Part shown: piece by piece, positions 4,192 through 62,014 of the stretch
Position numbering within the stretch: position 1 is the stretch's first letter
Layout of the letters: every line of letters begins with the position of its first letter
Source: Octopus sinensis
Lineage: Eukaryota
DNA: 64,000 nt
NCBI RefSeq assembly: GCF_006345805.1
Contig: NC_042997.1
Coordinates: 89,218,001 to 89,282,000, forward strand
Direction: 5' to 3'
Made by a program: the position numbers and the translations under genes
Notes under the pieces: generated by a model
What the model saw: only the letters and a program-made list of their open reading frames with translations
The model's database searches: none
Told to the model about the DNA's origin: nothing

Positions 4192-4269
4192 TCAGAGGTC
4201 TAATCCTGACACATTTCCTACAGGGACAGCTGATTCAAGCCTCAACTTTCCTCTTGATTTGATGGATTC
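4192..4269 (-). CDS. DGCR8: DGCR8 terminal coding exon
   Basis: ttgcag|[28 protein letters not shown]; phase 0 matches exon 15. Confidence 0.85.
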   Translation of the reverse strand, partial: ESIKSRGKLRLESAVPVGNVSGLDL

Positions 4270-19200: not shown

Positions 19201-22200
19201 AAATTTGCTGCAAGCTTTTAAAATTTGCAGAATTATCTCAAACAATTTTGATATGCTATATGAGAGGATGAAGAAAATTTTGTATTAATGCATGACAATA
19301 TAAATTGCATGTTATTCAGTAGATCATTATCTACTTGAATTATTTAAAATCACGCAATTGCCCCACTTGAGTTACTTTCATAGGTAACTTTTTGTAATTA
19401 ATGAAAAGAATGTTACTCAAATGTGAAAATTGATATAGAGAAATATCAAATACATCAAATTCAATCCATGGAAAAACAGATGTATAATGATGGTAATGCT
19501 GATGATGAAGTTTGCCACAAACAAACTTCCATGACAAAAGGCATAATATAAATTTACTTACTAAAGCTGGCCGTGATTGCTTTTTCATTAAACTCATGTG
19601 ACGTCTTCTTTCCTTCCATGTTCTGCAAAAGATAATCATGATTACACAAAGGAGTGGCAATAATGAAATAAATTTAAAAGAATCAAGAGTTTTCAACCTA
19701 CATCCTATGATGTTCCCAGTTTTTAATTATTCTACTTAGGTAGCAAGAAATTAGTGGCTTGGAAAAATACTGATTCAATTGACTGACAATAAACCCCTTG
19801 AATCCTGCCAAGATACTCAATAGATGGATAAGGTATGAAATGACAAGTGAAGTGTCAGTTCTGTCTTTTATGTGGTCACTGTTTATGTATAAAAGATATT
19901 CTGCATAAATCACTAACAAATGGGCACAGAGAAATGATTGTTGTTGTTTAGCCTCAAGTAAACCATAATCAAACCAACTTACCATAAAAGGCGTCCTACA
20001 TATGACTATTATACCATTTTGTATATCTAAGACTGTTATCCAATGTTTTTATTTTTTAAGATGATAGGATGCAATTTAAAGAAGGTTGCTATTTGTAGCA
20101 GGTACAGCAACAACATAGAGACTCCTGAAACACCAACAGGCGATTCTCAGTCAAACATAGATACAAGACAAGTTAAGTACCATCTTTTATGTAGACAAGT
20201 CAACCAATTCCTTAAATGTTTTGTTTACAAATCCATATTGGTTGTTTGCAGAAGAACGTATTTCTCTTTGATAAAAACACAAAGCAACACAAGTTTTAAA
20301 ACATAATGCTGGGAACCAAACTCAAACAAACACAAAGGACTAGCACAACACTATTACTTGAATTTCAATAGTTCAGAAGCTGTCCGTTGTGTATTGAAAT
20401 CTTAATCAGTATCAAACAAAATGCTATACATTTGTTTAAATAATTAAAAACCACCAGTCACATGGCATGCATGAGTTTTATATGAACTTATCTACTTTTT
20501 TTTGTATACATTACAATCAAAATAAACAGGGACATATAGTTGATTCCATTTCTACAGGATTATGGTTGATATTGCTACTCCTTTTCATATGTTCTGTTGG
20601 TTGTTCTTCCACTACGGCAAGATAGGAATTCACAAACAACAAAACTTGGCAATGTCATCGCTGATAGAGCAAGGAAAATCTCTTGATGACATAAACTTAC
20701 AGTCAATCAAAGACATCTCAACCTGGTTCATGGCATTCAAAGCAAAAGTTTATGCAGACGAATTAAAGGATAACCTACAAAGTAATGACCAAAGTCCTAT
20801 GGCTATGAAATTCATTTCTTTGGTAGAAATTCCGTAATTAAAAATTATCCAAGATATTAATATCTTGAAGAATATTATGAAAATGACTTACAATGATCTA
20901 AAAAATTCAATTCTATATCACATTATTCATTCAAAGAAACTGATACTAGCCAAAAGAACAAAATTCTTCTCCACTATTCAACAACCCAATGAATCAATTT
21001 CTCAATTTCTTTCAAATCTGTGACATGCCAGTGAATACTGCGATTTTGAAAGTCTGAAAACATCTAAAATGCCAGTGAGTGAAAAACTTACACTGTCTTG
21101 GCTGTCAGTCAAAGCAGCACCAAGGAAAGAGAGAAAGTTCTTCAAGCTAATGATGTTAACAAACTCAGTTTAGAAGCTACAGTACAATTTTTACAACATG
21201 CTTTGCAAATATCTGAATTTTGCAACAACACTTCAAAAGGAGAAGTCAATGCCTATTCCAAAACAAATGTGCAAAATAAAAGAAAAAATTTGAGAGACCA
21301 ATCCTGTTACTGCTGTGGAAAACTTTAGTTTCCACACCATAAATGCCCTGCAATAAAAGCTATCTGCAAAAACTGTGGCAAGAAAGGCCACTATACAAAA
21401 GTTTGCTAAAGCGCCAAGAATGATCGCAGGATGAGTCATCAGGATGAAATCATGACTTTTATCAGTCACGCATTGGAAAAGCCCAAGTTTGAATCTGCCT
21501 CATTTAATGGGCACATGATAGACATGATGTATGATAAAGGTGCTCCCTGCAGCATTACCTCATCTGTAATAGCAAAGGATAATAGCATGACAATTACATG
21601 GCAACATACTTCAAACTAATCGTATGATGTACACCACATGGAATGCATTGGGGACGCTTGCCTTAGTGTGAAACAAGGAGGTTGGTAATTCCTCCATACT
21701 TTTAAAATAATTAAAGGTAACCACAGATATGGTCTACTAGGTTGTGACCTGCTCAATTTTGAAAAAATTTGCAGTATTGTGTCATTTCTGCCAATGATAA
21801 AAGGAGAGCAAGCTTCTGTCAAATTAATACTTAATGCCTCTGATAGATACTGTGCTGCTAGAAGCATATCTATTACTCTCAAGGAAGATGTAGCAAAGAA
21901 AATAGATGCACTGGAAGCCAAAGGTGTAATTAAAAACTGTGCTCTGGGTGGTATACTCAAAACTTCTCCAGTCATGTGGATTAGAAAGAAAAATGGACGA
22001 CTGCACATGTGTCCCAATTAAATGAAAAAATATGCACGGAAGCTTATCCTTTGTCACAAATAGAAACCATGTTCAGCAAGCTTAGTGGTGCAAGATTCTT
22101 CACTAAGATTGACTTAATCAATGCATACTAGCAGATCGAACTCAATGAAAAGAGTCAAAAACTCTGCACCATCAATACTACAAGAGGAGTATACTTGGTT

Positions 22201-25200
22201 ATGTGAATACAGATGGGGATGAAAAATAGTTCTGCAATTTTTCAGCATGCTATAGAGAATGTAATGCTCAAGCGACTAAAAAATTTCATTGCCTACCAAG
22301 ACGATATAATTGTCTTTGTTAAGACAGAAGAGAGCCTGAATAAACTTTTAAATGCCATCCTCGGAAGACTACATGAGAAACAAGGCTGTGTCAACAAAAG
22401 AAAAATGTGTTCAAAATACTATAAGCATCACATTTTTAGGCCACGGGATATTGGCAGAAGGAATTAAACCTGCAAAGGAACTCACTCACAGAATCATAGC
22501 ATTAAATCAGCCAAAAACACTGAGGAACTGCAATCTTTTCTTGGGTTAATCGGATACTTTCGGCAATTCATTTCAAATATCAATGAGAAAACAATTAGCA
22601 TGCAGAAACTAGCTACTGCCAATTGTTTTCAGTGGACAAACAAGTGTTAATTTAGATTCAAGAATATTAAAGATGAGCTATGCAAAGAACCAGTGTTGAA
22701 GCCATTTGATCTATACCAAGCTCATGATGGATGCATCAATGAACAACATTGCTGCAATACTTTCACAAAATGGTCACCATGTGTGTTAAGAAAATTGACA
22801 CCTGCTGAATCTAATTGGTCAAATATCAAATGTGAATTTGCCATCGTATGGGCCATTACCCATCTCAAACAATTTCTGCTAGGTAAAAGGTTCAAACTCA
22901 ATATGGATCATAGACCCTTAAAATATATCTTCCACCCAAAAAAGCTGATCCCAATGAATGTTTCTGCTAAAATCAGACAATGAGCTATTCAATTAATGGC
23001 ATTTGCTTTTGATATATCCCATATCTCTGGCTCTAAAATTCCTCATGTTGATGCAATGTTGAGATTGAAAGTAGAGGACGAGGGAATTGTCTTTGCAGTT
23101 GAGCCATGTACATTGATCATGTGAAAAATATCACTGAATGCAACAGACACATTCAGCAAATCAATCGCATGCTCAAATCCAGAAAATGAACTTCGCAAAA
23201 CAACTGCAACCTCCCTTTGAAATGTGTGCGTGATCAACTAACAATAGAAGACAGAATTCTATATTTGCAAACGCAAATGTTTGTTCCCTACCAACTATGT
23301 GACAGTGTGCTTCGCGACAGTCATGATACACATTTGGCTGTTCAGCAAATGCTCAATAAAATTTCTCTTGAGCTCTGGTGGCCAAATATGTCTCAAGATG
23401 CGACTACCTTCATTTCCAATTGCACTACTTGGCAGCAGAATCAAAGTATGAAAGACAATTTGATAGTGACATGGAACAAAGACGGTCCTTGGGAACATAT
23501 TTACATGGATTGGGCTTTCATGAACTGAATTGGCAATTTACTTATTGTCGTCGATTCATATTTCAACGACACTGATGCTATCCTTTGCACCTCATGCAAA
23601 AAGTAAAACATAAAAAAGTGCTTGACGTGTCTCTTCACTCTGTTTGGACTGCCAAAAGTTACTGTATCAGACTGTATGTACTGAATTTACAACATTGAAA
23701 TTTTGGCTATCATCTCTTGGCATAAAGAGCATATATACACCTCCTTATCATCCACATTCAAATGAGCAGGCCAAGCAAGTTGTCCAAACCATTGAATGCC
23801 CCTTATCTGCATGGAATCCTGTCATCGATTGGTATCCCTATTTACAGCAAGTTCTACTCAATCGCCAATCTTCACCAGGTGGAAAGCTGCTTCTCCTGGG
23901 GAAAGGTTATTCGGAAGATCATTACATACCAGCTGCAACCCACTGAATCAACTTTCTTATTGTGGTGGCATGTATTGTGTACTGAACTCTTAATCAATAT
24001 ATAACAAATGCTGTGCATTTGTTTAAATAATTAAAAACTGCCAGTCACATGCACAAATTTTATGTGAACTTGTCGGTTTTTTTTCTATATATTGCAATCA
24101 AAATAAACAGGGACACATAGTTGATTCCATCCCTACAAGATTACGGTTGATGTTGTTACTCCTTCTCATATGTTCTGCTGTTGGTTGTTCTTCTGCTAGG
24201 GCAAGACAGAAATTCGCAGTTTATGGCTATTTGATCCTTGTTTCTATACTTGTGCTTATGAAATAAGCAAATAACAAAACTTGAGACTGTCTATAGACTC
24301 ACTGAACTTGTATCAATCATTACCATTTGAACATGATTGTACAAGGTAGTATAGGTTGGACAAGTTTACATTGTTACACATTTTGCTGCACTCTTAATAC
24401 CAAGGTTTTTAGGTTGAAACCAATACTTCACATGTAGTTTGGTGATCCCTGCTCTAGGCTAACAGATGTGCTTTCCCTTCATTCTTCTTTACAACCATTA
24501 CTAATTGAAACTAGCTGGATCTGTGTCACTTTTACTGAGGTCCTCCCAACTCATTCATCTCTCCTGTCTTCATCACCCATATTGTGTCCATTTTTTCCCC
24601 TCAGGTCCCATGCTAAACAGTTTGTCCAGACATTTTCTCCCAGAATATCATTCCTCTGGAATTCACTCCCAACCATATCTTTCTGTACCCAGTGGTTAAT
24701 GTTCAAAAACATTAACCCCATCAATTCTCTGGACATTAGCACAGCTCCTTCAACCTGTCAAACTAGGCCTTAACCCTTTCGTTACTATATTTCTGACCAA
24801 AATACACCCCTCATGAGTTTCAATTAAATTCTAAAATAATCATGAATCTAGGCTTGTTTCATTAAATAACTGTAACTTTTTTACTTATCAACATATTAAT
24901 GTGATATTTGGAACATAATTAAAGAAAGGGTTCTTAATCAATTCTATTGCATAACTTTTGTCTCAAAGTAACTTTAATTACAGGTAAATCCAGGTAAATT
25001 GAGTAAAAGGTAAAAAATATTAAAATTTTGTTTAAACATCACCATAGAAAATGAATCATCAGCTAATATTCAAATGAATATGCAACAAAATTTTGATAAA
25101 GAAGAATTGTGCACATCACTGGATCATCAGTTGAATTTAATGCACAACAGGTGTACCATAAAGGTGGAATAAACTGAAATACTGGAATCCACCGCAAGTT

Positions 25201-33500: not shown

Positions 33501-36500
33501 AATGCATTTATGTGAATACATGTATTTATCTAAATTTTGCATATTTCTGAGAGTGGTTTCCCATCTTCAAACCATATTGCATTATTTATGTACATATCAT
33601 CATCATCATTTAACATCGGTTTTCAATGCTGGCATGAGTTGGATGGTTTGACCACAGCTAGCAAGCTGGAGAATTGTATCAGGTTCTAGCCCAATTTGAC
33701 CCTGATTTCTATGGCTGGATGCCCTTCCTAATACCAACCACTTTACAAAGTGTGCTGGGTGCTTTTTATGTAGATCAGCACACAAGTATAACAAGATAAA
33801 AATAAGTGAACTTCATGAAGGCTTTGAAGGACACCTATAAACTCAGATTTTGTTATTAGCAACTATGAAAGTGTTATATTTGTGGCACCCATTAAGTGCC
33901 TTACAGTATGGCACTGAAATGAAATCTAATTTGTCAATTCAAATTTGTTTATACACATTACTAATAATAATTACCAAGTGAATTTTCCTTTTTTCTTTCT
34001 TCAGCACACTCAATCTTAACTGCTGGAGTTTTTGAACTGCCATCAACATCTACCATAGGGCAAGTATTACATTCCAGGTTGTTGTTCAATTGATCAGTGT
34101 CATTCTCACTAATGGCTGGGAATTCTGAAAAAAAAAAAAAAAAAAAAAAAAAAAATTCAATGATAAATACTGCTTGGGTACCAGAAACAGTAACAATAAT
34201 AAGAAAACCTACATTAAAAGAGCTAAACAAAATCATTCAAACTATTTCTTAAGAAATTTCGTAACTCATGTTAGTGTGGCACAATATACTAAGCATGTTT
34301 AGTTTGTGGGTCATTATTAACTCTTTAGCTTTCAGATTATTCTGTCAAATGTTATGCTTATTGACATTGTTTTGAATTAATCATCCATTATCTTGTAGCT
34401 TTAAGATTTAAATGATGTGATTGTTTAGGGTTACTCTAGTGGTTAACTAATCATGTGGAACACATTTATTACTCCACATTATTATATAAAATTAAAAAAA
34501 CAACTCAATATAAGTATTATACAGAATGAGAGAAAAATGCAACTGTTTTATAAGCTATCTGCCACAGACTTTCCTTAGTCACATGTTATCTAATTTCCCA
34601 AAACTGACAGTTTAATGTTGTCTTGTTTAAACATCAAAAATCATGCTATCACATTACTGTTAACATGAGATTTTAATAGATAAACATTTATTGTATAAAA
34701 TTTACCAATATTACAATGTATACTTTTTGTTCTTTAACATGCTTTGTTCACTATTTCTCCACATCTATATTCCACTTAGCTAATGCAAAAAAAGCCTCAA
34801 CATGGTCACCCAACCTGCTGGAAATAGCAACCAAATCTACCTTTAATTACACCCTTTGTCTTTACATACTACATAATGTAATCCTAGATATACAAGACAG
34901 GATGGTCATGAGTGGAATGCTTTTGATCATAGGCTTCCATATTCAATTGATCCAGTGCTAATCAAAGCGTTTTGACAATATTCCACTCACCTAAGACAGA
35001 TAGTAGCTTTAATTTTGGTAGCTATGACTCTTAGTTTGAAAAAATTTCAAGAGAATAATTTGTTGCAACAAATGAAAAACTTAAGACGTATATCCTTGTG
35101 GTTGATTTTGATAGTAATAGTGATTGTACAGCAGTACCAATTTTAATAATAGAACAGGACATTTTACAAAAAATGCTTTCACCGTGTGTGCGTGGTCATG
35201 TGTTTACACATCTACTTACACACACATATAGCCCATCTATGTTATGTGTGTGTCATCAGTCTATAATGCAAATGGCAGTGGAATATGAAAACAGCTACAT
35301 AATAATAAACAAGAAGACACGTCAAGCTAAGTGAAATCATGGCCATTAATGCATACAGGCTTGTTCTCTATGTCTCTCTCTCAGCTGAGAGATCCTAGTT
35401 TTGCAGACTCATGGGTGCTGGTGCAATGTAAAATCACCTGTGCTAGTGCTGTGTAAAAGTACCTGTGCCAGTTCCACTTAAAAGGACCATGGCTGGCGTC
35501 AGGTTAAAAGCATCCAGTACACTCTGTAAAGTGGCCAATGCTAGGAAGGGCATCCATCCACAGAAACCAATCAAAAACAAACACATAGAACCTGGGCAGC
35601 TCTTCAGCTGGCCAACTATTGTCAAACCATCCAACCCTTGCCAGTATAGAGAACAGACATTAAATAATGATGATGGCGGTAGTGGTGGTGGTTGCTGTCA
35701 TTGTCATTGTTATGGCATCACAGCACAGTGCTACGTTGACCAGATCCTAAGACCTCACATCGTGCCCTTTTCTGCATGTCACCAAAGCCATGTGTTTCAG
35801 CAGGACAATGCTCTTTCCCATACGGCCAGGGTCACCATGGACTTCCTACATCAGCACATCAGAACCATGTTGTGGCCAGCTCTCAGCCTGCCAATTGAAC
35901 ACCTGTGGGATGAAATTCAGAGATAGCTGAACCAGGTGGTCCCAAGGCTGACAACTCGTGTGGAACTGGAGGCAGCTTTCCTCAGGGTGTGGGCATAGGT
36001 AGCAATGGCTTTTATGAACCAACCCATGCACTCCATGTACCAATGGTGTATGGCCGTTTTGAACACCCAGGGAAGGCATACACAGTATTAAACATGTCAT
36101 GCCCTACAATCTTGATGTGCTGGATCCGCCCACTACCAGAACACATGACAACAACCTATAGACTGTGGTCAAAGTGCATCCAAGAAATTGACTTTATCAG
36201 ATTTATCAAAATTTATCTCTGACCTAATGAAATTAAAACATATTTCAGTCACACACATCTCGCATTTCTTTTACAGTTCAGTGTACATATGGTGCTGGTG
36301 CCACATAAAACACACCCAATACATTCTGTGAAGTGGCTGGCATTAGGAAGGGCATTCAACTGTAGAAACCATACCAAATCAGACAGTAGAGCTTGGCAAA
36401 CTCCTCAAGTTTGTCAGCTCCTGTGAAACTGTCCAACCCATACCAGTATGGAAGACAGATGTTAAATGATTCTGATGATATATGATAAGCTTCTGCACAG

Positions 36501-42500: not shown

Positions 42501-45500
42501 AAAGTGCAAGGAATATTAATGTAACATATGGAGATTGGACAATAAGCATAAGCCAATGTCAATGGTGGTTCCAGAAATTCCGAGCCGGACTACAGCCTAG
42601 AAGATGAACCTTGTCCTGGAAGATCTCTAGAACTCAGAAAGGACATCCTGCAAATACAGTGGCACAAAATTCAATCGTAACTATTGAGGAACTAGCAGAG
42701 ATGCTTGGATCTGGTCATTCAACCATTCATTGACACCTGTGTACTATTGGAAAAGTCACCAAATAGGGTCAACGGGTTCCTCACAAACTTTACAAGTCTA
42801 ATCGCATGTAGAGAGTGAATGTATGCTCTTTTTGCTGTCACATCTCACGAATGAACCTTTTTTGGACCAAATAGTGACTGGTGATGAGAAATGGGTTCTC
42901 TATAAAAATGTCAAGCACCAAAGACAGTGGGTAGAGAAAGAAACACTGACACTCCATGCTAAAGAAAGTCTTCACCCATGTAAAGTATTGTTATCTATTT
43001 GGTGGGATATGAAAGGTTTAGTCCATGTTGAACTTTAAACCCAAACCAAACATCAACAAGGGAGATCTACTTTGTTTATCTTAATTTTCAATAATAAAAG
43101 AAGTATAAAAAAACCGCATTATTTATGGGATGACCCAAAACTTCACCCACCCTACCCTTCATATATGCGGTATCAAACTAGAGCACTGATGATAACAAAT
43201 GCTATACCCCTCTATCATTGTGGCTTGTTTTCTTTTTGACAAATGCACTTATTAACTTCCTACTCATTCATATCCACCTCTCATTAACCATATTGTGAAA
43301 CACCAAACTGAACAGTACACCTAGTCTTTCCACCTCAGAAAGTCATACTTTTAGAATTTTATGGGACAGGTTTCCTCTTTTGCCATGAAGATTTTTTATT
43401 TTATTTTTTATTTGTTTGCATAACATTTTACTAAAAATGTCATTAAAAAATTAATATATTCAAGAAAAAATTTCACATTATTTTAAAAAGTTTTCATTAG
43501 GTGTATGAAGGTGTTATAGGTGAATGCCCTAATTTGCTTTGGACAGAGAAGTTGAAGATTGCTTGTTCTGTTATCTGGGTTTGTGGAACTGGAAAGAAAA
43601 ATGTGGTAGGAGCTAAAAGAGTAAAAAAAAAAAACGTCAGATATGTAAGATACACAGCTGAGCCAGTGTTCTGAATTGAAGAGAAAAGCTCACCTGATTC
43701 ATCATTATTTTCAGCTGGTTCAGAATTTTGGTTATCTGTACATTCAAGTTCTTCAGTGATAGTTAAGGGTTCAAGATCTTTAAGATTACCTCGCTGACAT
43801 TCTTTCTCCAATTCACGGGAATAATGAAGACAAGGAATTGCACTTACAGGAATGTCATGTTTCTAGCAAAATAGAAACAAAATACAAAAGTGAAGAAATT
43901 TTGATCTTGTGATTGTTTATTTTTAGAATAACACTGGCAGGTTTGAACATAAAACAGGTAGAATATTTGAGTCAGTTATGGATGGTTTAAATGCTAAAGG
44001 GTTAAACAATCAACTGAAATGATTGCCAGTAACTATTCTAGGATCATTACACTGTTTTCTTTTAAAGATTCATTTTCCACAGGGTATCAAGGCTTTTTGA
44101 TGTTGCAGTATACAACAATATATCTGGTATATTGTTGCATACTGTAACAGCATAAGCTTTTATAATTTAATGTGTTTCTAAACACTTGAATAGCAATATA
44201 ACCTTTTTTTCAGTTCCAGGGGCTGAAACAAGTAGATATATGTTTTGCTAAGTTAGGCTAAAGGATTAAATAGGAGCCATTCAGATATGTGACCAAAATG
44301 ACTGAACCCTTTTCACAATAACATCATTTGTAAATACTAACCCACTGACAAGGTGGAAACATTGAAACAAGTAGTACCATCTACTCTGACCAAGAACAAA
44401 GCCCAAGTCCTGCAGTATGTTTTCAAATATACAATTAGTCTTTTTTAATGTGTAATTATCACAAAAAATGTAGATAGATACATGGCAGTAAGTGCATGAG
44501 TTCAAACTCTTTGTGCTCTAAACAAAATTATTTGCTGAAAGTTGCTCATGAATAGCTACAACACTAACACCTATTTTGAAAGCCTTATGATTTTAGCACT
44601 GTCAAAACAGTTCTGTGTTGTCTCCACGACCTTTTGTCCTTATACTAGCCAATATTATTCCATTCCTATCATACAGCATAACATCTTTTTAGCATCAAAT
44701 TTTTTAAGATTTCTTTTTATCCATAGTACCTCATCCATATAAATAACATAAAAACATTTTACAATTCCTCTACACCTTTTCTTTCCAAGAGAACCCCAAA
44801 AGTAAACAGTAATTGCCTTATGTCTTAGACAACTTGCTACATAAAAAGTCAAAACCAGTGTACTAACCATACTTAGAAGAGTACAGTATTGGTTTCAAAT
44901 TTTGGCACAAGGCTAGCAACTGCAGGGCAGGGAGTAAGCCAACTGCATCGAATCCAGTACTCAACTGGTACTATTTTACTGACCTCAAGAGGAATTTGAA
45001 CTCGGAATGTATAGACAGACGAAATGCGACTTAGACATTTTGCTTGGCATGCTTACAATTCTGCCAGTTCAGCACCTTTAAAAGAGTATAATATTAATAA
45101 ATTGAAATTTATATAAAAGTAATGCTATTTGCCTCTTACAAGAAAGTTTTGTTTTTATTTTAAAAAAAAAAACACAAAATTGTATGAAGCCAAATTAAGT
45201 AATAAGCCATAAAAGGCTGCAAAAATAAAATGTATATATGTATGTATATATACTTACTCTGGCACTACCAGGTCCCAAGAAGTATGGTTTGGAGAGAGTA
45301 CATACTCTTGATTCTTTATGCAAATAAACTGGCATGCCACTATTATGAGTTACTATTATCCAGCCTTCTGGTAGAATGTCAAATGGATCATGGCCCCTCT
45401 CTGAAACAATATATTTTATTTATATAAAAGAAAAAGCATTGTTAAATAATATTGACATAAATCTGTTCAGTTTGATACAGGTATAAACTGAATAGATTCT

Positions 45501-46504
45501 AAAATTCAGTATAAAATCATTAACCAAATTTTGTTCTAAATACAATATAATATTAATGTTAATTTCACATGATATTTGTAATTAAAATAATTAACTATAG
45601 TTGTAGCTAGTAAATTCTGATTGTATTAATCAGAAGAAATTTTACACAACTTTTTTTTTAATCAGAGCAGGTTCTTTAAAAAGTAAATAGGTTTATACAT
45701 ATAAAAAGCAACCTTTTTAGTTCAATGATCTCATAATTAGGAATAATGATGAATAAAATTGTCTAAGTTTTTCATGTATCTGATATCATAGCAGATGTTG
45801 AAAGAAAGTTGTGTAATTCAAAAGGAAATGCAGTTATAAGATAATAGATAAGAAATAATAAAAATTATAAAATTTTCTTATGGGGATGAAAGACACTTCA
45901 AAGTAAAAAAAAGAAAAAGAAAAAAAAAGAATAATAATAGTTTACCTTTTAAAACAATCTTTTGTACTTCAATTGGCCCCTGCGATCCGTCATCTTTTGT
46001 TTCTCCATCTGATCCAGACTTGCGGGAGTCAACCCCCTCTTCCAGCCATGCATAGACCTCATTATCATCCAAGTATTCTTCATCATCATCGTCACTAGAA
46101 AGATCAAGTGATTCCCGGCCGTTTGAAATATAACTCCGAGCACTCAGATCAGTACCCAGTCCATCATCATCCAGTTCAATATCATCTATGATTTCAAACA
46201 CATGAGAAGTTTGTGCAGAATGTTCTCCACTAGGAAGTCTAGATTCTCGATCACAGTCTAAATAGGATTCAACACAGGTAATAACACTAGAAACAGGGGC
46301 CATAATTAGTGGACGTTTTTCAGGAGTGCAGCCATAGTCTATGTCGTTTTTTCTACCATCATCACTGTCAAAGTACAACCTTTTATTATTAGTTAGATTG
46401 GACGTTTGCGTTGATGGTGGCAGTATGTGGTTCTGACAGTTTTCATCATTGCTGTTTTGTGCTTCATCGTCATCTGCATTGCATGGAGATCCAGGGACTT
46501 CCAT
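4192..46504 (-). CDS. DGCR8: DGCR8/pasha (Microprocessor complex subunit), 16 coding exons, 679 aa
   Basis: Hand-spliced exons, all GT-AG, all phases compatible, 2040 nt total. Motifs: [48 protein letters not shown] (WW region), IPCLHY (heme Cys), dsRBD1 [13 protein letters not shown]...[14 protein letters not shown], dsRBD2 [18 protein letters not shown]...[33 protein letters not shown]. Confidence 0.97.
5512..7765 (-). mobile_element. RTE-clade LINE, 5'-truncated and decayed, with (GAT)n 3' tail
   Basis: RT fragments [47 protein letters not shown] and WELLYADDL (~6850); multiple stops and frameshifts; CAT repeats at the plus-strand left end. Confidence 0.9.
7790..7950 (-). mobile_element. 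tRNA-derived SINE (head and central domain)
   Basis: Similar copies at ~44890-45080 (-) and ~52760-52950 (+); gagttcaaattc B-box-like motif and shared ctttcatcctttc core. Confidence 0.7.
8064..8174 (-). CDS. DGCR8: DGCR8 coding exon 15 (C-terminal tail, Drosha-binding helix region)
   Basis: tttcag|[37 protein letters not shown]|gtcagt. Confidence 0.95.
9666..9749 (-). CDS. DGCR8: DGCR8 coding exon 14
   Basis: ttccag|[28 protein letters not shown]|gtaag. Confidence 0.96.
9919..10131. mobile_element. TTAA-flanked MITE (piggyBac-like ends), family of ~130-220 bp
   Basis: TTAA-ccc(t/a)ttagcatt ... aatgct(g/a)aaggg-TTAA; related copies at 14337-14473, 26418-26637, 34317-34446, 40692-40918 and a partial copy ending 44005. 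Confidence 0.8.
10367..10423 (-). CDS. DGCR8: DGCR8 coding exon 13 (dsRBD2)
   Basis: tttcag|[19 protein letters not shown]|gtacgt. Confidence 0.96.
10890..11090 (-). mobile_element. SINE 3' portion
   Basis: Reverse complement of the SINE tail at 33190-33390 (gatagaataagtac...tgactgaaacaagtaa). Confidence 0.7.
11098..11197 (-). CDS. DGCR8: DGCR8 coding exon 12 (dsRBD2)
   Basis: ttgtag|g [33 protein letters not shown]|gtaagt. Confidence 0.95.
11348..12451. mobile_element. Non-autonomous long-TIR (foldback-type) DNA element with 8-bp TSD
   Basis: Inverted arms 11348-11637 and 12172-12451 (~85-90% identical by eye), beginning GGATCTG; ATTGTTGT at 11340-11347 and 12452-12459. Confidence 0.88.
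13376..13476 (-). CDS. DGCR8: DGCR8 coding exon 11
   Basis: tttcag|[33 protein letters not shown] ag|gtaagc. Confidence 0.96.
14048..14130 (-). CDS. DGCR8: DGCR8 coding exon 10
   Basis: ttttag|[28 protein letters not shown]|gtaagt. Confidence 0.95.
15219..15317 (-). CDS. DGCR8: DGCR8 coding exon 9 (dsRBD1)
   Basis: ttgtag|[33 protein letters not shown] g|gtgaat. Confidence 0.96.
15465..15566 (-). CDS. DGCR8: DGCR8 coding exon 8 (dsRBD1 start)
   Basis: tttcag|[34 protein letters not shown] g|gtaagt. Confidence 0.96.
15667..16705 (-). mobile_element. piggyBac internal-deletion derivative
   Basis: TTAA|CCCTTTCGTTAC ... GTAACGAAAGGG|TTAA; acidic N-terminal transposase remnant and [13 protein letters not shown]...[22 protein letters not shown]. 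Confidence 0.92.
18095..18167 (-). CDS. DGCR8: DGCR8 coding exon 7
   Basis: ttacag|[24 protein letters not shown] g|gtaatt. Confidence 0.93.
19562..19622 (-). CDS. DGCR8: DGCR8 coding exon 6
   Basis: ttttgcag|a [20 protein letters not shown]|gtaagt. Confidence 0.95.
20381..24218 (+). mobile_element. Full-length but decayed Ty3/Gypsy LTR retrotransposon
   Basis: ~250-bp LTRs at 20381-20634 and 23971-24218 (TG...CA); gag Zn-knuckle remnant, protease DKGA, RT YQDD, RNase[17 protein letters not shown], integrase [15 protein letters not shown] and YHPHSNEQA, in PR-RT-RH-INT order. Confidence 0.93.
24774..26173 (-). mobile_element. Second piggyBac deletion derivative (same terminal family, different internal part)
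   Basis: TTAA|CCCTTTCGTTAC ... GTAACAAAAGAG|TTAA; internal [24 protein letters not shown] and [21 protein letters not shown] transposase-core remnants; ~178-bp internal tandem duplication. Confidence 0.88.
26285..26354 (-). CDS. DGCR8: DGCR8 coding exon 5
   Basis: ttttcag|[23 protein letters not shown] aa|gtaagt. Confidence 0.95.
27836..28560. repeat. Inverted-repeat element (~200-bp arms) carrying a hammerhead-like CTGATGA...GAAACCGATT motif; Penelope-like remnant
   Basis: 27836-~28030 is the reverse complement of ~28385-28560; CA-rich spacer; CTGATGA at 28492, GAAA at 28549. Confidence 0.65.
28590..29340 (+). mobile_element. RTE LINE fragment
   Basis: [26 protein letters not shown], homologous to the RTE at 7354-7764; decayed. 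Confidence 0.8.
31130..32450 (-). mobile_element. CR1/Jockey-group LINE RT remnant
   Basis: Decayed PQGTV-like motif, [17 protein letters not shown] and C-terminal [14 protein letters not shown]...KILEGL. Confidence 0.7.
33012..33390 (+). mobile_element. Near-complete tRNA-derived SINE
   Basis: ggtgcaggtgtggctgtgtggtaagaagcttgc...gggttcagtc head (A/B-box-like) plus shared tail; related partial copies at ~30330-30500, ~36480-36610, ~49520-49640, ~27320-27420. Confidence 0.8.
33975..34124 (-). CDS. DGCR8: DGCR8 coding exon 4
   Basis: long poly-T tract + cag|..[11 protein letters not shown]...[18 protein letters not shown] g|gtaatt; phase 1/1. Confidence 0.9.
35705..36283 (+). mobile_element. 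Tc1-like transposase C-terminal remnant with right end
   Basis: [13 protein letters not shown]...[13 protein letters not shown]...[17 protein letters not shown]; ends ...gttcagtg|TA. Confidence 0.85.
37600..39650 (+). mobile_element. CR1/L2-like LINE remnant
   Basis: Decayed RT motifs [19 protein letters not shown] and NADDTTL at ~39380-39480. Confidence 0.65.
40240..42200 (+). mobile_element. Old RTE LINE remnant (interrupted by a TTAA MITE)
   Basis: [23 protein letters not shown]... and [10 protein letters not shown] at ~41190-41490. Confidence 0.7.
42246..43138 (+). mobile_element. mariner element, internally deleted and decayed
   Basis: TIR ttgggt(t/c)atcccataaataatg at both ends, TA on the left; [15 protein letters not shown] and [17 protein letters not shown]...[16 protein letters not shown]. 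Confidence 0.9.
43694..43862 (-). CDS. DGCR8: DGCR8 coding exon 3 (heme-binding Cys)
   Basis: tag|[25 protein letters not shown]...NDES g|gtgagc. Confidence 0.93.
45258..45400 (-). CDS. DGCR8: DGCR8 coding exon 2 (WW motif)
   Basis: cag|..[47 protein letters not shown]|gtaagt. Confidence 0.97.
45946..46504 (-). CDS. DGCR8: DGCR8 coding exon 1 (acidic, low-complexity N-terminus to KIVLK)
   Basis: ATG at 46504 in gcaATGg context with an in-frame TAG just upstream; [16 protein letters not shown]...KIVLK; donor AAG|gtaaac (phase 1). Likely acceptor ctctttccag at 46682. Confidence 0.9.
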
Positions 46505-47941
46505 TGCAGTCTATCACTTTTGTTGAAGGTATGAGACAGCTTAAAGCCAGAGCTGTGGACCTGTGCTATAAAAGAGCCAAGCTTGACTATCAGCTTCTTT
46601 TCTAAAGAGCTGGACTGTTAACCGGACAGACCTGCTCAGCCACCTCTCTCTTGCTAACTAGTCAAAGAAATTAAGCCTCATCTGGAAAGAGAGATGCCCT
46701 TACATTAGCCTTACCACACATGAAACTACCTATAGAAAGCATGTGAAGGATTGATTACAATAAATAAAACTGTAAATTTCTTTTGGAAAAAATTATATCA
46801 AAATAATAAAAACAATTTTATTGAATACAAATACAAATGTTTTTAAAAATTAGGTGACAAAATAAAAAATTCAGTAGATATTTGTATTTTGAGCAGCAAT
46901 TCATGTGACAGCCTTAAAAGTTATTGTATAAATAGCAGAAAACCATTTTTACAAAAATAAATAAATGAATAAATGAAAAAGGTTTTGAAAAACAAGTTTC
47001 ATACTAACACTTCATTTCTAATAACAGGCTTCTTTAAGTAAATGACACCAACATCTTACATTATTAATACTGGAATTCAATGGAAGCCAATATTCAATAA
47101 AGGATGAACACATGATGGGAGACTCCAAAGCAATGAGAAAGTTAAGTCACTCAACACAACCAGGATCTGATATTTCTACTTAAAGGTTTAATTCTTGTAT
47201 TTTTGAGAATTAGGTGTATCAAAGGATATATAAAAAAAAATGAATGGTTTTGTGTGTGCACACAAATCCACTTCCACACACACACGCACAAGAGAGAGAG
47301 AAAGAGAGAGAGAGAGATTACCTTGAATATTTTTCCTAAGTCACTTTTGAAGACTTTATTTGAGAAAATTCTTAAAGAAATGAATATTAGGGTTCTAAAA
47401 TGAACCTTTAAGGCTTTTTTGCTCATCTCTTCATTTAACAAAAATTGTAAACTCTATCATCTATGTACGTATGCATATATACATATGACATACACACACA
47501 TACACAAACAAACAAACACAACAGCAAATGCTAGTAAATGTAGGAAGCATTAGTTTTTAAAAACAAGTAATTCTAAAAAAACAGGCCAAACCTTAAAAAG
47601 GTATAACAAGAACAACAACAATAAAGCTGCATGTGATCCTGTACTTATTTATCTTTATTTTTACCTTAATGTAAAGGTGAAGGTCAAGGTCCGTTAAGAA
47701 AAAATATTGAAACTGAGGAGAAAGGAAGGGGTTTCTTACTTTTCCAATTCTAACAAGATCTGAGGTGATGAGTCTATTAGCATTGCCTATTTCATGAATA
47801 CATTTAAAAGGAATAGGGAGCAACTAGTTAGATACGGACAAAAAGAAAGAAATTAATAAGTAGCAGAGTAAGAAAGAGATATTGTGAAAGATGGAGCAGT
47901 TAGTCAACCCATCCATCCTTGAGGACCACCTCAATACTTAC

Positions 47942-48022: not shown

Positions 48023-51000
48023 CTGCAGTTGTAAAGTACTGTTAAAACCTAAGAAGCCATTGCTTGGCATTTGTTAAATGTAACCAAGCCACCAGTCTCT
48101 GGGGTTTTAACAAATGGCAACTATTAAAAGTAGCCGCAATTATTATTCCACACTTTGTCCTGGTAACTAGGAGAAAGCTACATGCAATGTTGGTATCATT
48201 TCGCAAATATCTTAATTGGCTTTTCTTTTCCTCTGAGTTCATATGTTACTGGTCCACAGGAAGAAAACGGTTAAGAGAAATTTCTGCCTAAAAATTAAAG
48301 AGTAGCACTGTAGGATTAGAAGCACCTCAAATGCTGTAAAATTGAATGTGGAAAAGTAGAAACCGCAATGCAAGGGGGTAATAACAGCAAAATTTAGTTT
48401 GTGAAATGAAGTCAACACAGTGATGGTACTTATTACCAATTTTCAACCTAACAAGCTATAGCTCCTCCAAAATACCAGGTATAAGTTTTAAAAAATACTA
48501 TTACCTTACTAAATATTAAAAAAGCAAATTGTTAAACAGATATACCCTAACCTCAAAGTTAATATATTTCCCAGTTTTCCACCAAATTTCCAGAACATTC
48601 AGCTACCTTTGCATCTACTTCATATCAAAGAGTGAAAATTCTGTAAAATCTATACAATATTCAGGACTTTCACCAATCCAAATGGCAGCAATATATCTGA
48701 GTATCATTGCCTTTTTGGAAAGTAAATAACAAAACTGCACATCAATTGCAAAATCCACATGACACCTTGAGCAAGTGTATTTATTCTACTACAACCTCAA
48801 GCCAAGCAATAACCTTGTGAGGGAATTTGGTAAATGGTAACTGAAAGAAGCTTGTCAGTCATGTGTGTCTGTATGAACATTTACAAAACTATGCTGAGTT
48901 ATAACTTGTGATGTCACCATTTGTGGCTCAGCAACAACCAGTGACATCATTTCTGGTTGGGTTACAACTAGTGACATTTCCTGTCCACAAATTGTCCAGT
49001 AGCCATTTTCAAATGCTTCTTGAATAAAAGGTTGGCAACAGGAAAAGCATCCAGCCATTAAAGTTCTTCTACAATTTTCTTCTGATTAAGGCATGAAAAA
49101 CAGATATTAAACAGTACAAACTTATTAAATTCGATCAGTGAGATAAGATACCAAGCAAGAGCTTTCTCCATGCTTAAATAAAATAAACTGAAGGAATTTT
49201 AGCTTACATACTGATTTTCCCTTTTTAATCACAACCCTACATTAACAATGAACCAATGAGTAATGCTTAAAATGATTTTGTTTGTAAATTAAAGAAAAAC
49301 TTCTATTCTTCAGTTACAGTGTCATGATTAACATGACAGAGGATAAACATTTACTCATAAAGTTTATAGGCCCTTTTTTTCCAAGTAGACAATGGAAAAA
49401 TTTATAGCCAACTGCATACCTAGATATTGTGTAAACTTGATTCACCAAATAAAAAATTAAAACAGTCCCCTCCATAGCTAAACTCAAATACTAGGGTAAT
49501 TTTTTTCTATAAATCAGCTTTCTAAACTCTATTAATAGATGCAGGCATGACTGTGTGGTCCTAGAAGATTGCTTCGCAACCACATGAGTTCAGGTTGACC
49601 AAAACCTTGTGAGTGAAATTTGATAGACAAACTATATGGAAAATTGTCACATATATTGTGTGTGTATGCCTGCATACATGCATTTGTCCACCTGTATCTT
49701 TGCATTGACACCACTTCAACAGAGATGACATTTATCTCTCACAGGACTTAAGAGTCCAGTAACACTGATTCAACATGGGAAGATGTGAATCAAGTATCTT
49801 ATTTGTAAACAAGAAAGCTAAAAAGCTGGCATCAGGAAGAAAATTTGGCTGTAAGAAGACTCATTGGAGGAGTCCTCAAGAAGACTCATTCAAGTAGATG
49901 AAAGATGATGAAATTGAAAAGCACTTACTACAGCAAAATGTTACTTTGACAATCTACCAGCAATTTTGATAAAAATGTGGATCAAATATTGTACAGAAAT
50001 AATAATGATGTCACTAAATGTTATTATCTAAAAAAAAAAAATAATAATCGAAGTTGCATGAACAGACTATTTCAAACAGCAGTGTGACAGTGATATTTCA
50101 CTATAATCACTACTACCGTATGATATCACAAAAGTTGAGGTATCAAAAATACCCTTCTCTTGTAATCTATCAAAATCAATACTAGCAACATAATTTAACC
50201 CTTAAAACAGGCATGGGCAACATTTTCGAGAAGCAGGCTGCATGAAACATGGCTCATCATCTGGTAGGCCATACAACTAAAAAATTCAAGGTAAATTTTT
50301 ATTAGGCATGCCATTCAGAAACTCCTGCAGGCCACAAGTTGCACAAGATTGCCTTATCACTATAAAATAAAAATCTATAAAATGCTTCATTATCATCAAC
50401 GTCACCATCGTATATAAACATACCTAAAACATTTTCCTTATTCTACCTAACTGCAGGATTGTCTTTTCTATTGGTGGGGTAGTGAGTACTTAAAAAAAAA
50501 AAAACTGTAGATTTTGAAAATGAAAAACAAACTAAATAAAAAAAATTAAAAAAAGACATAATATCAATGAAAAGAGTAACTGAAGTAATCTACTAAAAAC
50601 TACCAATTTTATTTTACTGTAATTTAAGTTTTGCTAAATTGGAGATGCTACTGAATGTTATCAACCTGTAAATTTGATATATTATCCTTAATAACAAATG
50701 TAGAACTAGATTAAAAAATTTTTTTTGTTCTTTATTTAAATAACCTTAAATGAAATGTTATTCTGACAACTTCAGACTAAAGAAATAACTTTACAATACA
50801 TACAAATATTTTAATTGTTCAAAGACCTCACTAAGTTCTTTGTAAATTATCAATACAGATTTTTCAATGTTTATCACTGTGTATTAGGTTAATTTTAACA
50901 CTATGGTACAAAGTCCTGATATTTCGTTTAGAATAATTCAGCAAATATCCAGAGATTTTATTAATATTTTCTGCTTACCAACCACTTTACTGCGACACAA

Positions 51001-56009: not shown

Positions 56010-56457
56010 TCCAGTACAGGATCACAAGCAGTGCATCAAAATACTTGAAGTATTCCATGAAAAATGCTGATTCTGATGATCATACACAATGTAGATGTTC
56101 ACTAAACCAAGGCAGACACTCAGCAGTAAATGTTAGCAGTAGACAGAAACACAAGGCCACAACAAGTATGTAGTCAGAGATGCCACCAGGTCCAAGAATT
56201 GAGGTGTTGCGACCTCCTACATGACCAGAAAGTCAAGGGGTGGGTTATAACAGAATCTACCCGGCTCGACCATGGTCAAGAGGAGAGTGCAATGTGTGAC
56301 AGCCCTCGCCTCTGCCGGACCAGATGACAACAGTGAATGGCGATACGCACGCCAGTAAGTCTGAGAGCAGAGACAAAAAGTCATCAGTCTTACTAGCATA
56401 CTTCGCTATGCACTTCAAGCATAGAGTACCCTGGTCGTCAGATGCCGAAGTACAACC
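56010..56457 (-). other. Candidate non-coding 5' leader exon of DGCR8, GC-richer and highly structured
   Basis: Acceptor ttgttattcag| at 56458, donor gga|gtaagt at 56009; visibly GC/CpG-richer than the flanks; no long ORF; same strand as and ~9.3 kb upstream of the first coding exon. The link to DGCR8 is inferred. Confidence 0.6.
56332..56414 (-). ncRNA. pri-miRNA-like hairpin (candidate Microprocessor substrate)
   Basis: Hand fold gives 27 bp over a 31/33-nt stem with a 19-nt apical loop, a UG at the basal junction and a CAUC (CNNC) downstream. Confidence 0.55.
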
Positions 56458-56751
56458 CTGAATAACAATGATAATCAGTAAATAAGCATCGTGCTACATG
56501 ATCATCAATGAATTAAGAGTTACATTAATAGTTAGTGGAATTAACAGTGGCTATAGCTAATAGGGTAAGACTTCTGTAAGAAGGCAAATATCACAAATCA
56601 CTAAGATCAAACATGATTTGGCATGGCTCATCTTAATCTCAATAACTAGTTTAACAAAATAGTGTTTGCATGCATTTATATCAACATGTGCAAATAACAG
56701 AAACTGGAATGCAAAATTTTTTGAGATTTACATTATGTTTGTGTATATGTG

Positions 56752-56754
<3 letters not shown>

Positions 56755-56799
<45 letters not shown>

Positions 56800-56842
56800 T
56801 ATACATATATATATATATATACATATATATACATATATATAT
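56755..56842. repeat. (TA)n microsatellite
   Basis: Directly visible; other (TA)n tracts near 30515, 32650, 58470, 60550-60612, 61529-61552, 62086-62103, 62676-62728; (GA)n at 58920-58958. Confidence 0.95.
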
Positions 56843-58457
56843 GTTAGAGATTCAGTGAACAAAAAAAAAAGAGAGATTACTTCATTGATAATGATCCAAT
56901 TTAACCTGATGTAGATAAACAAGTTTGCACATGCGGCTGAACTATTTTCATCAAGAAACCATAAAATAGATAATTTGTGCATCTTCATCCATGTGAAACT
57001 TCAAAGAAATAATACTTCTGAATATATATTGAGTGGAATACATAATAGTAACAATCATACATATCCTAGAAACATTGAAATCAGTTTAAATATAATTCAT
57101 AAACTTGCATAATAATTTTTATTTTTTTAAATTAAGAAACATGAAAAGGTTGGTGTTATATTTTCAAACTATCAGCATCCCTAATTAACTTATTTAAGAA
57201 TTTATTACATAGAAATTTTTACTTCACACCAAATTTTCAAACAGCACAATAGAAAATTGAACAGACATATAGTTATTATGCTTTTAGTAATATCAAAGAT
57301 TTGAGAGTAAGGAGAAAGAAAAGTATAAAAATTAAATAGAGAGGTGAATGATTAAATTTCTACTTAGTAATGAGTTTTAATTTAGATAATTGACATAAAA
57401 GAAAACAAACCTTTAAAAAATACTTTATAATAGTTAATACTACACATTCTATTTTTATAAAATCTAATTCATGTTCATGCTGTTGTTTTCCTTCAAATTC
57501 AATAGAAATAAAAACTTTTTACCATGCTAACCGATGTTTCTACGAATTAAGATATTGGCACCAACTGAATACATTAATATCCAACTATGAAGTGGACATG
57601 GTACATATTTTCAGCTAGGTTTACAGAAGTAAATGCAATGAGGTCTAAGCAACAGAACATTCTGGACCCAAAGCCCAGTACCTTAACCACAGTCACTGAC
57701 TCACATGAATACTAAACCATATCAGATCTGAAAATTCTTCTCAGTATGCTCAAACAGGCAAGAAACTAATTTATAAAGACAAAAACCAAAGACTTAGCAA
57801 AAACTCTTAAACCACATAAATACAAAAATGTTATGAAGAAATAATTTTCTACACAAAGGATAACTGAAATTAAATTAAGTACTAAAATGGCCCTTAAGCA
57901 ATACATTGGCACTTCCTGATTAAAAAATAGCAATCAGAACTTCAAAAAATTTCCATTGAAAATAACCAGAAATTACATGGAATAAGATATCGTAAAAGTG
58001 TCTTCTTGGTTTATAAATAAAGCAATAAAAGATAATTAACATTTTGGGATTTAAAAAACAAGAGCTTGAGTTCAAACTTTGATTCATCCACCCAATCTTT
58101 AGATATACTTGCTTGCTTATAACCTCATAGTTCAGTAGTTAAAGTCTTACATATAAAGTTTTAAAATACTTCTAACATCTTACTGTTCATGAAAATCTAA
58201 GGTATAAAAACAGTATTTAAGATTTAGGCACTAACTGCTATAAATATGACATTTGATTATGTACTGCAAAATTAATGTGGCTCCAAGCAGAAATATTATC
58301 TAATCACATCTCTAGACTTAAAAACAGCTATAAAAATAATTACAGTATTCTAAGATGCTTCAAATAACCTTTAGAAAGGCAAACAGAAAACAATGTTCAA
58401 AGAGATTTCAATTTGGAATTACTGAAAACAAATCAAAATATAAAGACTTGCTGATAA

Positions 58458-61552: not shown

Positions 61553-62014
61553 ACAATTTATAAGTAAGGGCAAAAGAAAAAAATTCTAATGCCAAAATAT
61601 GCCGAAAATAGAGACAATGTCAATAACCATGTAATTAATCACTACAAGCACGTGTTTCAAAGAAAGCCGACAGAAATTTCTAAAAAATTCCGTTATTACC
61701 ATATCGGACCCGATTTCAGAGTTAGTTCATAAGAACCTTCTCTTCATCAGTGATAAATGCAGTAAAGAAATAAGTGAAATACTTACTTATACCCAGGTAT
61801 AAGTAAGTATTTCACTTATTTCTTACTAAGGTTCTTATGAACCAACTCTGAAATCGGGTCCAATATGGTAATAACGGAATTTTTTAGAAATTTCTGTCGG
61901 CTTTCTTTGAAACACATGCTTGTAGTGATAAATTACATGGTTATTGACGTTATGTCTATTTTCGGCATATTTTGGCATTAGAAATTTTTTCTTTTGCCCT
62001 TACTTATAAATTGT
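61553..62014. repeat. ~460-bp near-perfect palindrome (hairpin element)
   Basis: Arms ~95% identical, centre tatacc-ca-ggtata at ~61795; a 21-nt segment (61740-61760) is present only in the left arm. Confidence 0.92.
61702..61755 (-). ncRNA. Minimal type I hammerhead ribozyme (Penelope-type)
   Basis: uauca-CUGAUGA-agag aag guuc uuau gaac uaa cucu-GAAA-ucgg-GUC/cgaua: intact core, 4+4-bp stem II, short stem III, GUC cleavage triplet, 4-bp stem I. Confidence 0.7.

Follow-up and report, generated by a model that had tools for sequence, protein, structure and literature searches.

Hairpins in a conserved leader exon and in the coding region of octopus DGCR8 as candidate parts of a Microprocessor feedback module

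The 64,000-nucleotide window of Octopus sinensis DNA analysed here (contig NC_042997.1, positions 89,218,001 to 89,282,000; features are given by their position in the window) carries a DGCR8 gene on its minus strand. Upstream of the coding region lies a candidate non-coding leader exon of 448 nt (56010-56457, minus strand) and, within it, a hairpin (hairpin 1, 56332-56414, minus strand) that is real, lies on the DGCR8 sense strand and retains its stem in both species compared. The reading favoured here, with a probability of about one half, is that hairpin 1 is a near-canonical Microprocessor substrate of the helper type, and that it belongs to an octopod DGCR8 feedback module together with a second hairpin of the same exon (hairpin 2) and a hairpin just inside the coding region (46353-46423, minus strand). 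The coding-region hairpin is a conserved RNA structure whose constraint goes beyond the protein code, and it is probably a homologue of vertebrate mir-1306, also known as DGCR8 hairpin B.

Work of Han and of Triboulet from 2009 reportedly places hairpin A (mir-3618) of the vertebrate DGCR8 5′ untranslated region (5′UTR) in Microprocessor feedback, and two hairpins of the Drosophila pasha 5′UTR, Dmel_422 and Dmel_474, are said to go back to Kadener in 2009 and Smibert in 2011. In vertebrates, Drosha cleaves two hairpins that flank the DGCR8 start codon (PMC2736397, PMC3814725, PMC13288104). The mammalian coding-region hairpin (mir-1306 in human) is itself a poor substrate, and its processing relies on a better “helper” that lies upstream of the ATG (human mir-3618; PMC13288104). 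In flies, the two hairpins of pasha are both located in the 5′UTR (PMC5749182). The two-hairpin layout is common to mammals and flies, although the microRNA (miRNA) sequences are not conserved (bioRxiv 10.1101/2025.09.09.675111). For molluscs, no report of hairpins of the DGCR8/pasha type was found in the literature.

The host gene is DGCR8: translated segments of the minus strand match the PDB chains 6v5b and 6lxd in phmmer with an E-value of 1e-76, and these stop-free segments encode the WW domain, the heme-binding IPCL motif, both double-stranded RNA-binding domains (dsRBDs) and the C-terminal region. An initial annotation of the window had assigned hairpin 1 to the DGCR8 strand, and the match places it on the sense strand of that gene. 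The N-terminal coding part of exon 2 (45947-46504, minus strand, ATG at 46504) is defined by the listing of open reading frames (ORFs) and by the homologues P0001-P0005, and the proposed acceptor of this exon, TTTCCAG/A, falls between 46682 and 46681. The ORF of exon 2 also leads to several relatives, one of which (L001), a 124-kb ENA contig, extends sufficiently far upstream to provide the second species for the comparison of the leader exon and is 71% identical to the window in nucleotides and 63% in amino acids over the exon-2 coding part.

The leader exon is bounded by splice signals on the DGCR8 strand, with ...TTGTTATTCAG/G at 56458/56457 on the acceptor side and GGA/GTAAGT at 56010/56009 on the donor side. 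Among the loci compared, it is seen in two species, those of the window and of L001. Its counterpart (L001:2723-3170) is 92% identical and 448 nt long in both, with 29 substitutions in 444 nt. Conservation stops no more than 10 nt past the donor GTAAGT and begins about 55 nt ahead of the acceptor AG, in the upstream intron; the exon borders proposed in the initial annotation thus coincide with the edges of the 92%-identical block. Elsewhere in the same pair of loci the introns are unalignable and the WW exon is 82% identical with a single amino-acid change, while within identical peptides 32 of 83 third codon positions and 17 of 31 four-fold sites differ (some 40-55% of synonymous sites). With 29 changes in 444 nt against 32 in 83 third positions (Fisher p 5e-13), the exon evolves several times slower than neutral sites and represents an exon-shaped block under purifying selection in two species.

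What this selection acts on is not an encoded peptide. The exon has eight AUGs and no conserved ORF: owing to indels and a lost stop, no ORF is intact in both the window and L001. The upstream ORF of 19 codons has no stop in L001 and differs there by non-synonymous changes. A coding exon or a conserved upstream ORF is ruled out by indels in the hairpin loop and downstream, by the lack of a three-nucleotide periodicity of substitutions and by the closure of all three frames where exon 2 begins. Likewise ruled out are a transposon or repeat, as the sequence is single-copy in the window and in L001, and an exon of a plus-strand gene, as that strand has no splice signals. No further homologue of the exon was found by a six-frame protein query, by exact ORF look-ups or by two DNA-pattern scans of Joint Genome Institute (JGI) metagenomes. 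The exon is richer in GC than its surroundings (47% against about 31%), and folded as a whole it reaches -144.6 kcal/mol (z -2.95). On the sense strand, its substitutions relative to L001 comprise 13 exchanges between A and G, four between C and U, and 12 transversions (p 0.049), a bias that either A-to-I editing or the exchange of A-U and G·U pairs in stems could produce. Close to the exon on its upstream side, a (TA)n/(TG)n microsatellite (56736-56846) gives rise to spurious sub-threshold Rfam matches to mir-297, mir-466 and mir-1277.

Within this exon, 43 nt from the acceptor and 322 nt from the donor, hairpin 1 folds in RNAfold into a stem of 27 bp (4+2+4+13+4), with three 1x1 mismatches, one 1x3 internal loop, arms of 31 and 33 nt and a 19-nt terminal loop. 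Its energy is -32.0 kcal/mol (z -4.37), a value that none of 200 shuffled sequences equals, and the core stem is kept in contexts of 93, 111, 151 and 448 nt. Drosha cuts are predicted between 56404 and 56403 on the 5′ side and between 56341 and 56340 on the 3′ side. Here the initial annotation proves accurate in its details: its minus-strand sequence of the hairpin is an exact match, its hand-drawn 27-bp stem is the minimum-free-energy stem of RNAfold down to the mismatches and loops, the UG that it noted at the basal junction is present at 56417-56416, and the CAUC that it put about 15 nt past the predicted 3′ cut begins at +15. The antisense strand folds to -27.0 kcal/mol; three G·U pairs give the sense strand its advantage of 5 kcal/mol, which is found in both species. 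Set against the geometry of primary miRNAs, with a stem of about 35 bp and a loop of at least 10 nt, the hairpin has 27 bp in the window and 29 bp in L001 and a loop of 19-20 nt. The putative miRNA duplex contains an unbroken upper stem of 13 bp plus a further 4 bp, which makes more than 16 paired nucleotides. The size of the hairpin, with arms of 31/33 nt (33/35 in L001) and a 19-nt loop, would be compatible with a Microprocessor substrate.

The counterpart in the second species (L001:2767-2850) has the same stem at -28.7 kcal/mol (z -2.3); a G>A and a G>U change add two basal pairs, with which it reaches -31.0 kcal/mol (z -2.9). The two versions are 95% identical over 83 nt, with two substitutions in the stem and two changes in the loop. 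Both stem substitutions preserve pairing, one turning A-U into G·U and the other U-A into U·G. The initial annotation had named conservation and compensatory change in related species as a test of the hairpin; the stem is retained in L001, without a double compensatory change and with loss of the UG.

Hairpin 2 (56207-56292, minus strand) follows hairpin 1 within the leader exon after a gap of 40 nt. It folds to -33.7 kcal/mol (z -3.08) in the window and to -34.6 kcal/mol (z -2.66) in L001, its sense strand being no more stable than the antisense one. Three of its changes relative to L001 preserve pairing, one breaks a pair and three fall in loops. Two non-overlapping hairpins of this stability do not occur together in any of 150 shuffled exons. 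A further candidate, “hairpin 3” of the leader exon (56068-56179), was dropped at z -0.94; it has in common with what we take to be the sequence of miR-3618 a stretch of 8 nt, which is about chance level (p ~0.1). By analogy, the position of hairpin 2 behind hairpin 1 may be seen as echoing the two-hairpin layout of mammals and flies. A comparable case is Drosophila pasha, a DGCR8 orthologue that also has two neighbouring leader hairpins, one of them deeply conserved in its clade and both unrelated in sequence to those of vertebrates. The pasha hairpins are experimentally cleaved and give small RNAs, whereas the octopus hairpins are predicted substrates.

The coding-region hairpin, which a hairpin scan along the sense strand of the related loci brought out, starts 81 nt after the ATG and spans the codons for (L/P)PPSTQTSN...RLYFDSDDG. 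Counterparts lie at L001:10096-10170 and in two distant DGCR8 loci, at L011:10141-10212 and L010:10121-10194; between the window and these distant loci, blastn aligns nothing else of exon 2. The hairpin folds in all six loci tested, with z between -4.7 and -6.6. In an alignment of seven rows, one of which is human, 94.6% of the cells are paired and six pairs are changed on both sides, five of them independently of the human row; shuffled alignments reach this in 0 of 500 cases, and slid controls give 0-3. The arms hold no synonymous difference in 15 codons for identical residues, whether L001 is compared with the window or with L011, whereas 22 of 47 third positions differ in the control, the WW exon (p 5e-4). 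The hairpin is therefore a conserved RNA structure, constrained beyond the protein code. In the window itself, the stem is down to -21.7 kcal/mol, weakened by a C·U mismatch that results from a G>U change (Asp to Tyr).

Is this hairpin related to mir-1306? On the sense strand, the Rfam model RF01014 (mir-1306) scores 12.1 bits in the window, 27.7 bits in L001 (E 1.7e-4 in a 106-nt search) and 18.2 bits in L011. All of these are below the gathering score of 70, and the unrelated mir-367 scores 21-31 bits at the same place; the score alone therefore proves nothing. The motif GCAAACGUCCA within the hairpin, by comparison, matches the Rfam mir-1306 consensus at 11 of 11 positions. The two also align in frame, PPPPLQTS...MDVGSGGDG in human (residues 36-58) against PPPSTQTS...LDFDTDDGG, and the human peptide is confirmed as residues 35-60 of 6lxd_B. 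The arms of L001 are identical to those of human mir-1306 at 20 of 26 and 19 of 28 nt, with a human nucleotide row that agrees with the consensus arms of Rfam and with the PDB protein. Human mir-1306 lies about 120 nt after the ATG (PMC13288104), as compared with 81 nt in octopus. Human DGCR8 was not detected at the protein level with the 40-residue octopus segment as query, so the link to mir-1306 rests on nucleotides, reading frame and position.

The octopus hairpin thus resembles vertebrate mir-1306 in gene, strand, reading frame, distance from the ATG and covarying stem, and differs from it in its Rfam scores of 12-28 bits, in a register slipped by one nucleotide in the middle of the stem and in an unrelated loop. 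On balance it is probably a homologue. The initial annotation had suggested hairpin 1 as the mollusc counterpart of the vertebrate and fly hairpins, unrelated in sequence, and had missed the sequence-related counterpart at 46353-46423. Judged by its sequence, the mir-1306-like hairpin is independent evidence for a system of DGCR8 mRNA hairpins in this lineage.

How might the hairpins act? The leader exon would be spliced to exon 2 (56010 to 46681), and when Drosha/DGCR8 is abundant it would bind and crop hairpin 1, either while the DGCR8 transcript is being made or once it is spliced. The weaker neighbour, hairpin 2, would probably be cropped too. Cropping would separate the cap-proximal leader from the coding body and so lower DGCR8 expression. 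It may occur jointly with that of the apparent mir-1306 homologue 81 nt into the coding region, for which hairpin 1 is the best candidate helper. In this role, hairpin 1 would resemble mir-3618 in its near-canonical shape of a primary miRNA, in having a weaker companion and a further partner hairpin shortly after the start of the coding region, and in its strong conservation within a clade. It differs from mir-3618 in that no sequence similarity between the two was detected, and in that it lies in a separate upstream exon that is constrained over all its 448 nt, and is a predicted substrate only.

Several observations weigh against self-regulation through hairpin 1. Between 4 and 9% of dinucleotide-shuffled exons hold a window as stable as the hairpin (p ~0.04-0.09), and when the two strands of the whole window are scanned in 85-nt segments it ranks about sixth among 35 loci with an energy of -28 kcal/mol or lower and at least 26 bp. 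Taken alone, hairpin 1 is not exceptional, and the single-hairpin signal within the exon is only marginal. The version in L001 is weaker, at z -2.3 to -2.9. Drosha prefers flanks that are single-stranded, but those of hairpin 1 engage in further pairing when 151 or 448 nt are folded. No double compensatory change is seen in the stem between the window and L001, and the arms, with 2 changes in 64 nt, do not differ significantly from the rest of the exon, with 27 in 380 (Fisher p 0.41); conservation is therefore not specific to hairpin 1, and the constraint on the exon is not confined to it. The basal UG is UA in L001, there is no UGU at the apical junction, and the CAUC (a CNNC motif) is conserved but sits at +15, one nucleotide short of the range from +16 to +18. 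A basal UG, an apical UGU and a 3′ CNNC help processing, do not define the family of substrates and are not universal outside vertebrates.

The search for relatives points the same way. In the distant loci L010 and L011, the 10 kb that precede exon 2 yielded no counterpart of hairpin 1, and a covariance model of the hairpin gave no match in either. Rfam yields no match for it, at the gathering score or at E-values up to 10. Its arms and seeds are absent from the supplements of the octopus study (PMC9699675) and the bobtail squid study (PMC8125070), a weak negative in that these supplements do not include the miRNA list itself, and its six candidate seed sites are likewise absent from the supplements of PMC9699675. 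A match to a known miRNA, which the initial annotation had suggested looking for, is thus seen neither among Rfam families nor in the octopus miRNA supplements. Finally, hairpin 1 is separated from the coding-region hairpin by about 580 nt in the spliced transcript and by about 10 kb in the pre-mRNA, whereas the vertebrate pair shares one exon. The autoregulation proposed in the initial annotation is partly supported: it stands on the gene, the strand, the exon borders, the refolding, the geometry and the second hairpin, and finds no backing in the UG, in double compensation or in conservation specific to the hairpin.

Two further elements bear on how the leader exon may be used. A 19-nt segment near its 3′ end (56013-56031, minus strand), which ends 3 nt before the donor, is complementary at 18 of 19 positions to an island in the first intron, AGUACAGGAUCACAUGCAG (47627-47645, minus strand). 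The complementarity has a blastn E-value of 0.023 in the window and 0.002 in L001, and RNAduplex energies of -32.0 and -35.7 kcal/mol. The island is identical in L001 (7909-7928; its partner in the exon is 3149-3167), although the surrounding intron is unalignable. In the window, 8.4 kb separate it from the leader exon on its upstream side and 0.9 kb from exon 2 on its downstream side; in L001, these distances are 4.7 and 1.9 kb. Island and exon end form a candidate long-range RNA bridge or editing-complementary sequence. The second element is the 5′UTR part of exon 2 (46505-46681, minus strand), which begins AUGAGGCUUAA...UAG, a sequence that closes each of the three frames, and which is not significantly structured (z +1.06). 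A stretch made up of ~40 nt of intron and the ~75 nt with which the exon opens (46607-46720, minus strand) is near-identical in the window and in L002, L001 and L004. In the intron portion of this stretch, the sequence GGTAAGG could represent an alternative donor.

It is conceivable that the exon is a regulatory leader, of the poison-exon or riboswitch-like kind, that works through alternative splicing and translation control and not through Drosha cleavage. Its eight upstream AUGs would silence translation on inclusion, inclusion would be set by RNA structure that includes the exon-intron pairing, and the hairpins would be structural or protein-binding parts. Ultraconserved “poison” exons are a known pattern in genes for splicing regulators and RNA-binding proteins, and the leader exon resembles them as an extremely conserved non-coding exon in the gene of an RNA-binding protein, at a position suited to self-regulation; it differs in lying in the 5′UTR, where it would act via upstream AUGs or cleavage instead of a premature stop and nonsense-mediated decay. 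The conservation of all 448 nt, predicted loops included, and of ~55 nt of the upstream intron speaks for such a role, as do the AUG load, the closure of every frame in the conserved opening of exon 2 and the perfectly conserved intronic 19-mer. Together, these features may point to splicing and translation control, in addition to cleavage or in its place. In a variant, the Microprocessor would bind and only modulate splicing, as is reported for the pre-miRNA-like exons DROSHA exon 7 and eIF4H exon 5 (PMC5473138, PMC4006729). The leader exon is like these in having a hairpin within an exon of an RNA-processing gene and conserved intron flanks that suggest regulated splicing, but those hairpins overlap a splice site and hairpin 1 is 43 and 322 nt away from its own. 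Alternative use of the exon is hypothetical, however, and a regulatory leader would leave a near-canonical hairpin and a second one unexplained in the one gene whose mRNA is known as a Drosha substrate elsewhere. Such a role is also compatible with cleavage. We regard this reading as unlikely, at roughly half the weight given to the feedback module.

Less probable still are three other explanations. The leader might host a lineage-specific miRNA gene, whose mature product acts on other mRNAs and whose effect on DGCR8 is a by-product. The geometry of hairpin 1, with its duplex of more than 16 paired nucleotides, is that of a miRNA, its arms are slightly better conserved than its loop (2 changes in 64 nt against 2 in 19), and coleoids have many novel miRNA families (PMC9699675). 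Yet the missing Rfam family, the absence of arms and seed sites from the supplements of PMC9699675, flanks that equal the arms in conservation, unlike those of a typical miRNA gene, and the few mature miRNAs that vertebrate DGCR8 hairpins give (bioRxiv 10.1101/2025.09.09.675111) make this improbable. Equally improbable is that the exon is conserved for a reason other than RNA structure, as a DNA enhancer or promoter or as an exon of an unannotated transcript, and that the hairpin arose by chance in a GC-richer segment. The 4-9% of shuffled exons with an equally stable 85-nt window, the ~35 comparable loci, the GC content of 47% against ~31% and the lack of covariation in hairpin 1 would all agree with chance, which fails to account for conservation edges that coincide with splice signals on the DGCR8 strand, for a stem retained in L001 with pairing-compatible changes only, for the pair of hairpins found in 0 of 150 shuffles, or for the more stable sense strand.

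Coleoid cephalopods keep the sequence around editing sites unusually conserved, and hairpin 1 and the exon-intron duplex might instead be substrates of ADAR. Both offer long double-stranded segments, pairing between an exon and a complement far away in an intron is the classic layout of an editing site, the A/G exchanges exceed the C/U ones by 13 to 4, and A-to-I editing is extensive in coleoids (PMC9699675). Editing in a 5′UTR would, however, be without recoding value, and the bias is marginal and also expected from A-U/G·U exchange in stems; of the explanations considered, this one seems to us the most remote.

Other hairpins accompany the gene. One in the first intron (48040-48113, minus strand) is 83% identical to L001:7342-7431 between unalignable flanks; its arms are conserved and its loop has diverged, with -26.1 kcal/mol (z -1.7) in the window and -31.9 kcal/mol (z -3.8) in L001. 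Going by its sequence features, it looks like a putative miRNA precursor, with no Rfam match and with candidate seeds absent from the octopus supplement of PMC9699675. A third hairpin in the 5′UTR part of exon 2 (46581-46665) was dropped, given z +1.06 for the surrounding 192 nt and the loss of the closing stem in L001. Upstream of the ATG in the distant loci, single-stem hairpins of -26.6 to -33 kcal/mol are found at L011:9645-9729 and at L010:7285-7369 and 8830-8914; these could be candidate lineage-specific leader hairpins.

The remaining DGCR8 coding exons extend over 4192-45419 (minus strand), as traced by stop-free segments, phmmer and location of the last exon. They include the WW domain (45250-45406, minus strand), the heme-binding IPCL motif (~43800-43862, minus strand), the dsRBD exons (between 15603 and 9561, minus strand) and, in the last exon, the C-terminal tail (4195-4269, minus strand), with the stop TGA at 4194-4192. 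The sequence AATCAAAA occurs at 2397-2404 (minus strand), 1,788 nt downstream of this inferred stop, near the position of a Mir-315 seed site placed in the octopus DGCR8 3′UTR at alignment position 1813-1820 (PMC9699675 Data S3), a circumstantial link of the window to Octopus. The DGCR8 introns contain fragments of mobile elements at 5300-7800 (minus strand) and at 21600-24000, 35465-35926 and 42823-43038 (plus strand), among them reverse-transcriptase ORFs, retroelement pol with integrase-like ORFs and remnants of Tc1/mariner-type transposases. The strongest inverted repeats of the window other than microsatellites are at 61761-61845, 906-990 (in the presumed DGCR8 3′UTR) and 44081-44165 (in a DGCR8 intron), with -46.5, -42.6 and -33.5 kcal/mol per 85 nt, respectively.

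Beyond octopods, a wider scenario may be drawn, tentatively and as one that we would sooner doubt than assert. Self-regulation of DGCR8 through hairpins would be ancestral to bilaterians, not an invention made separately by vertebrates and flies, and the coding hairpin would have been kept from octopus-grade molluscs to humans, with identity of single nucleotides even at synonymous sites. Octopods would have added an ultraconserved 448-nt leader exon with a canonical helper hairpin, a second hairpin and an exon-intron bridge that couples cropping to splicing. Because the hairpin sequences of vertebrates and flies differ, the circuit could be either ancient or convergent, and a lophotrochozoan case would add the third major branch of bilaterians. 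A leader hairpin exon that is constrained more than the codons of the WW domain, along with a mir-1306-like coding hairpin, would favour a shared origin of the latter, with helpers that are lineage-specific. If the ancestral scenario holds, mir-1306 would be among the oldest Drosha substrates and would have shaped the N-terminus of a protein. The miRNA repertoire of coleoids is greatly expanded (PMC9699675), which makes the way in which the level of Microprocessor is set in these animals a matter of direct interest.

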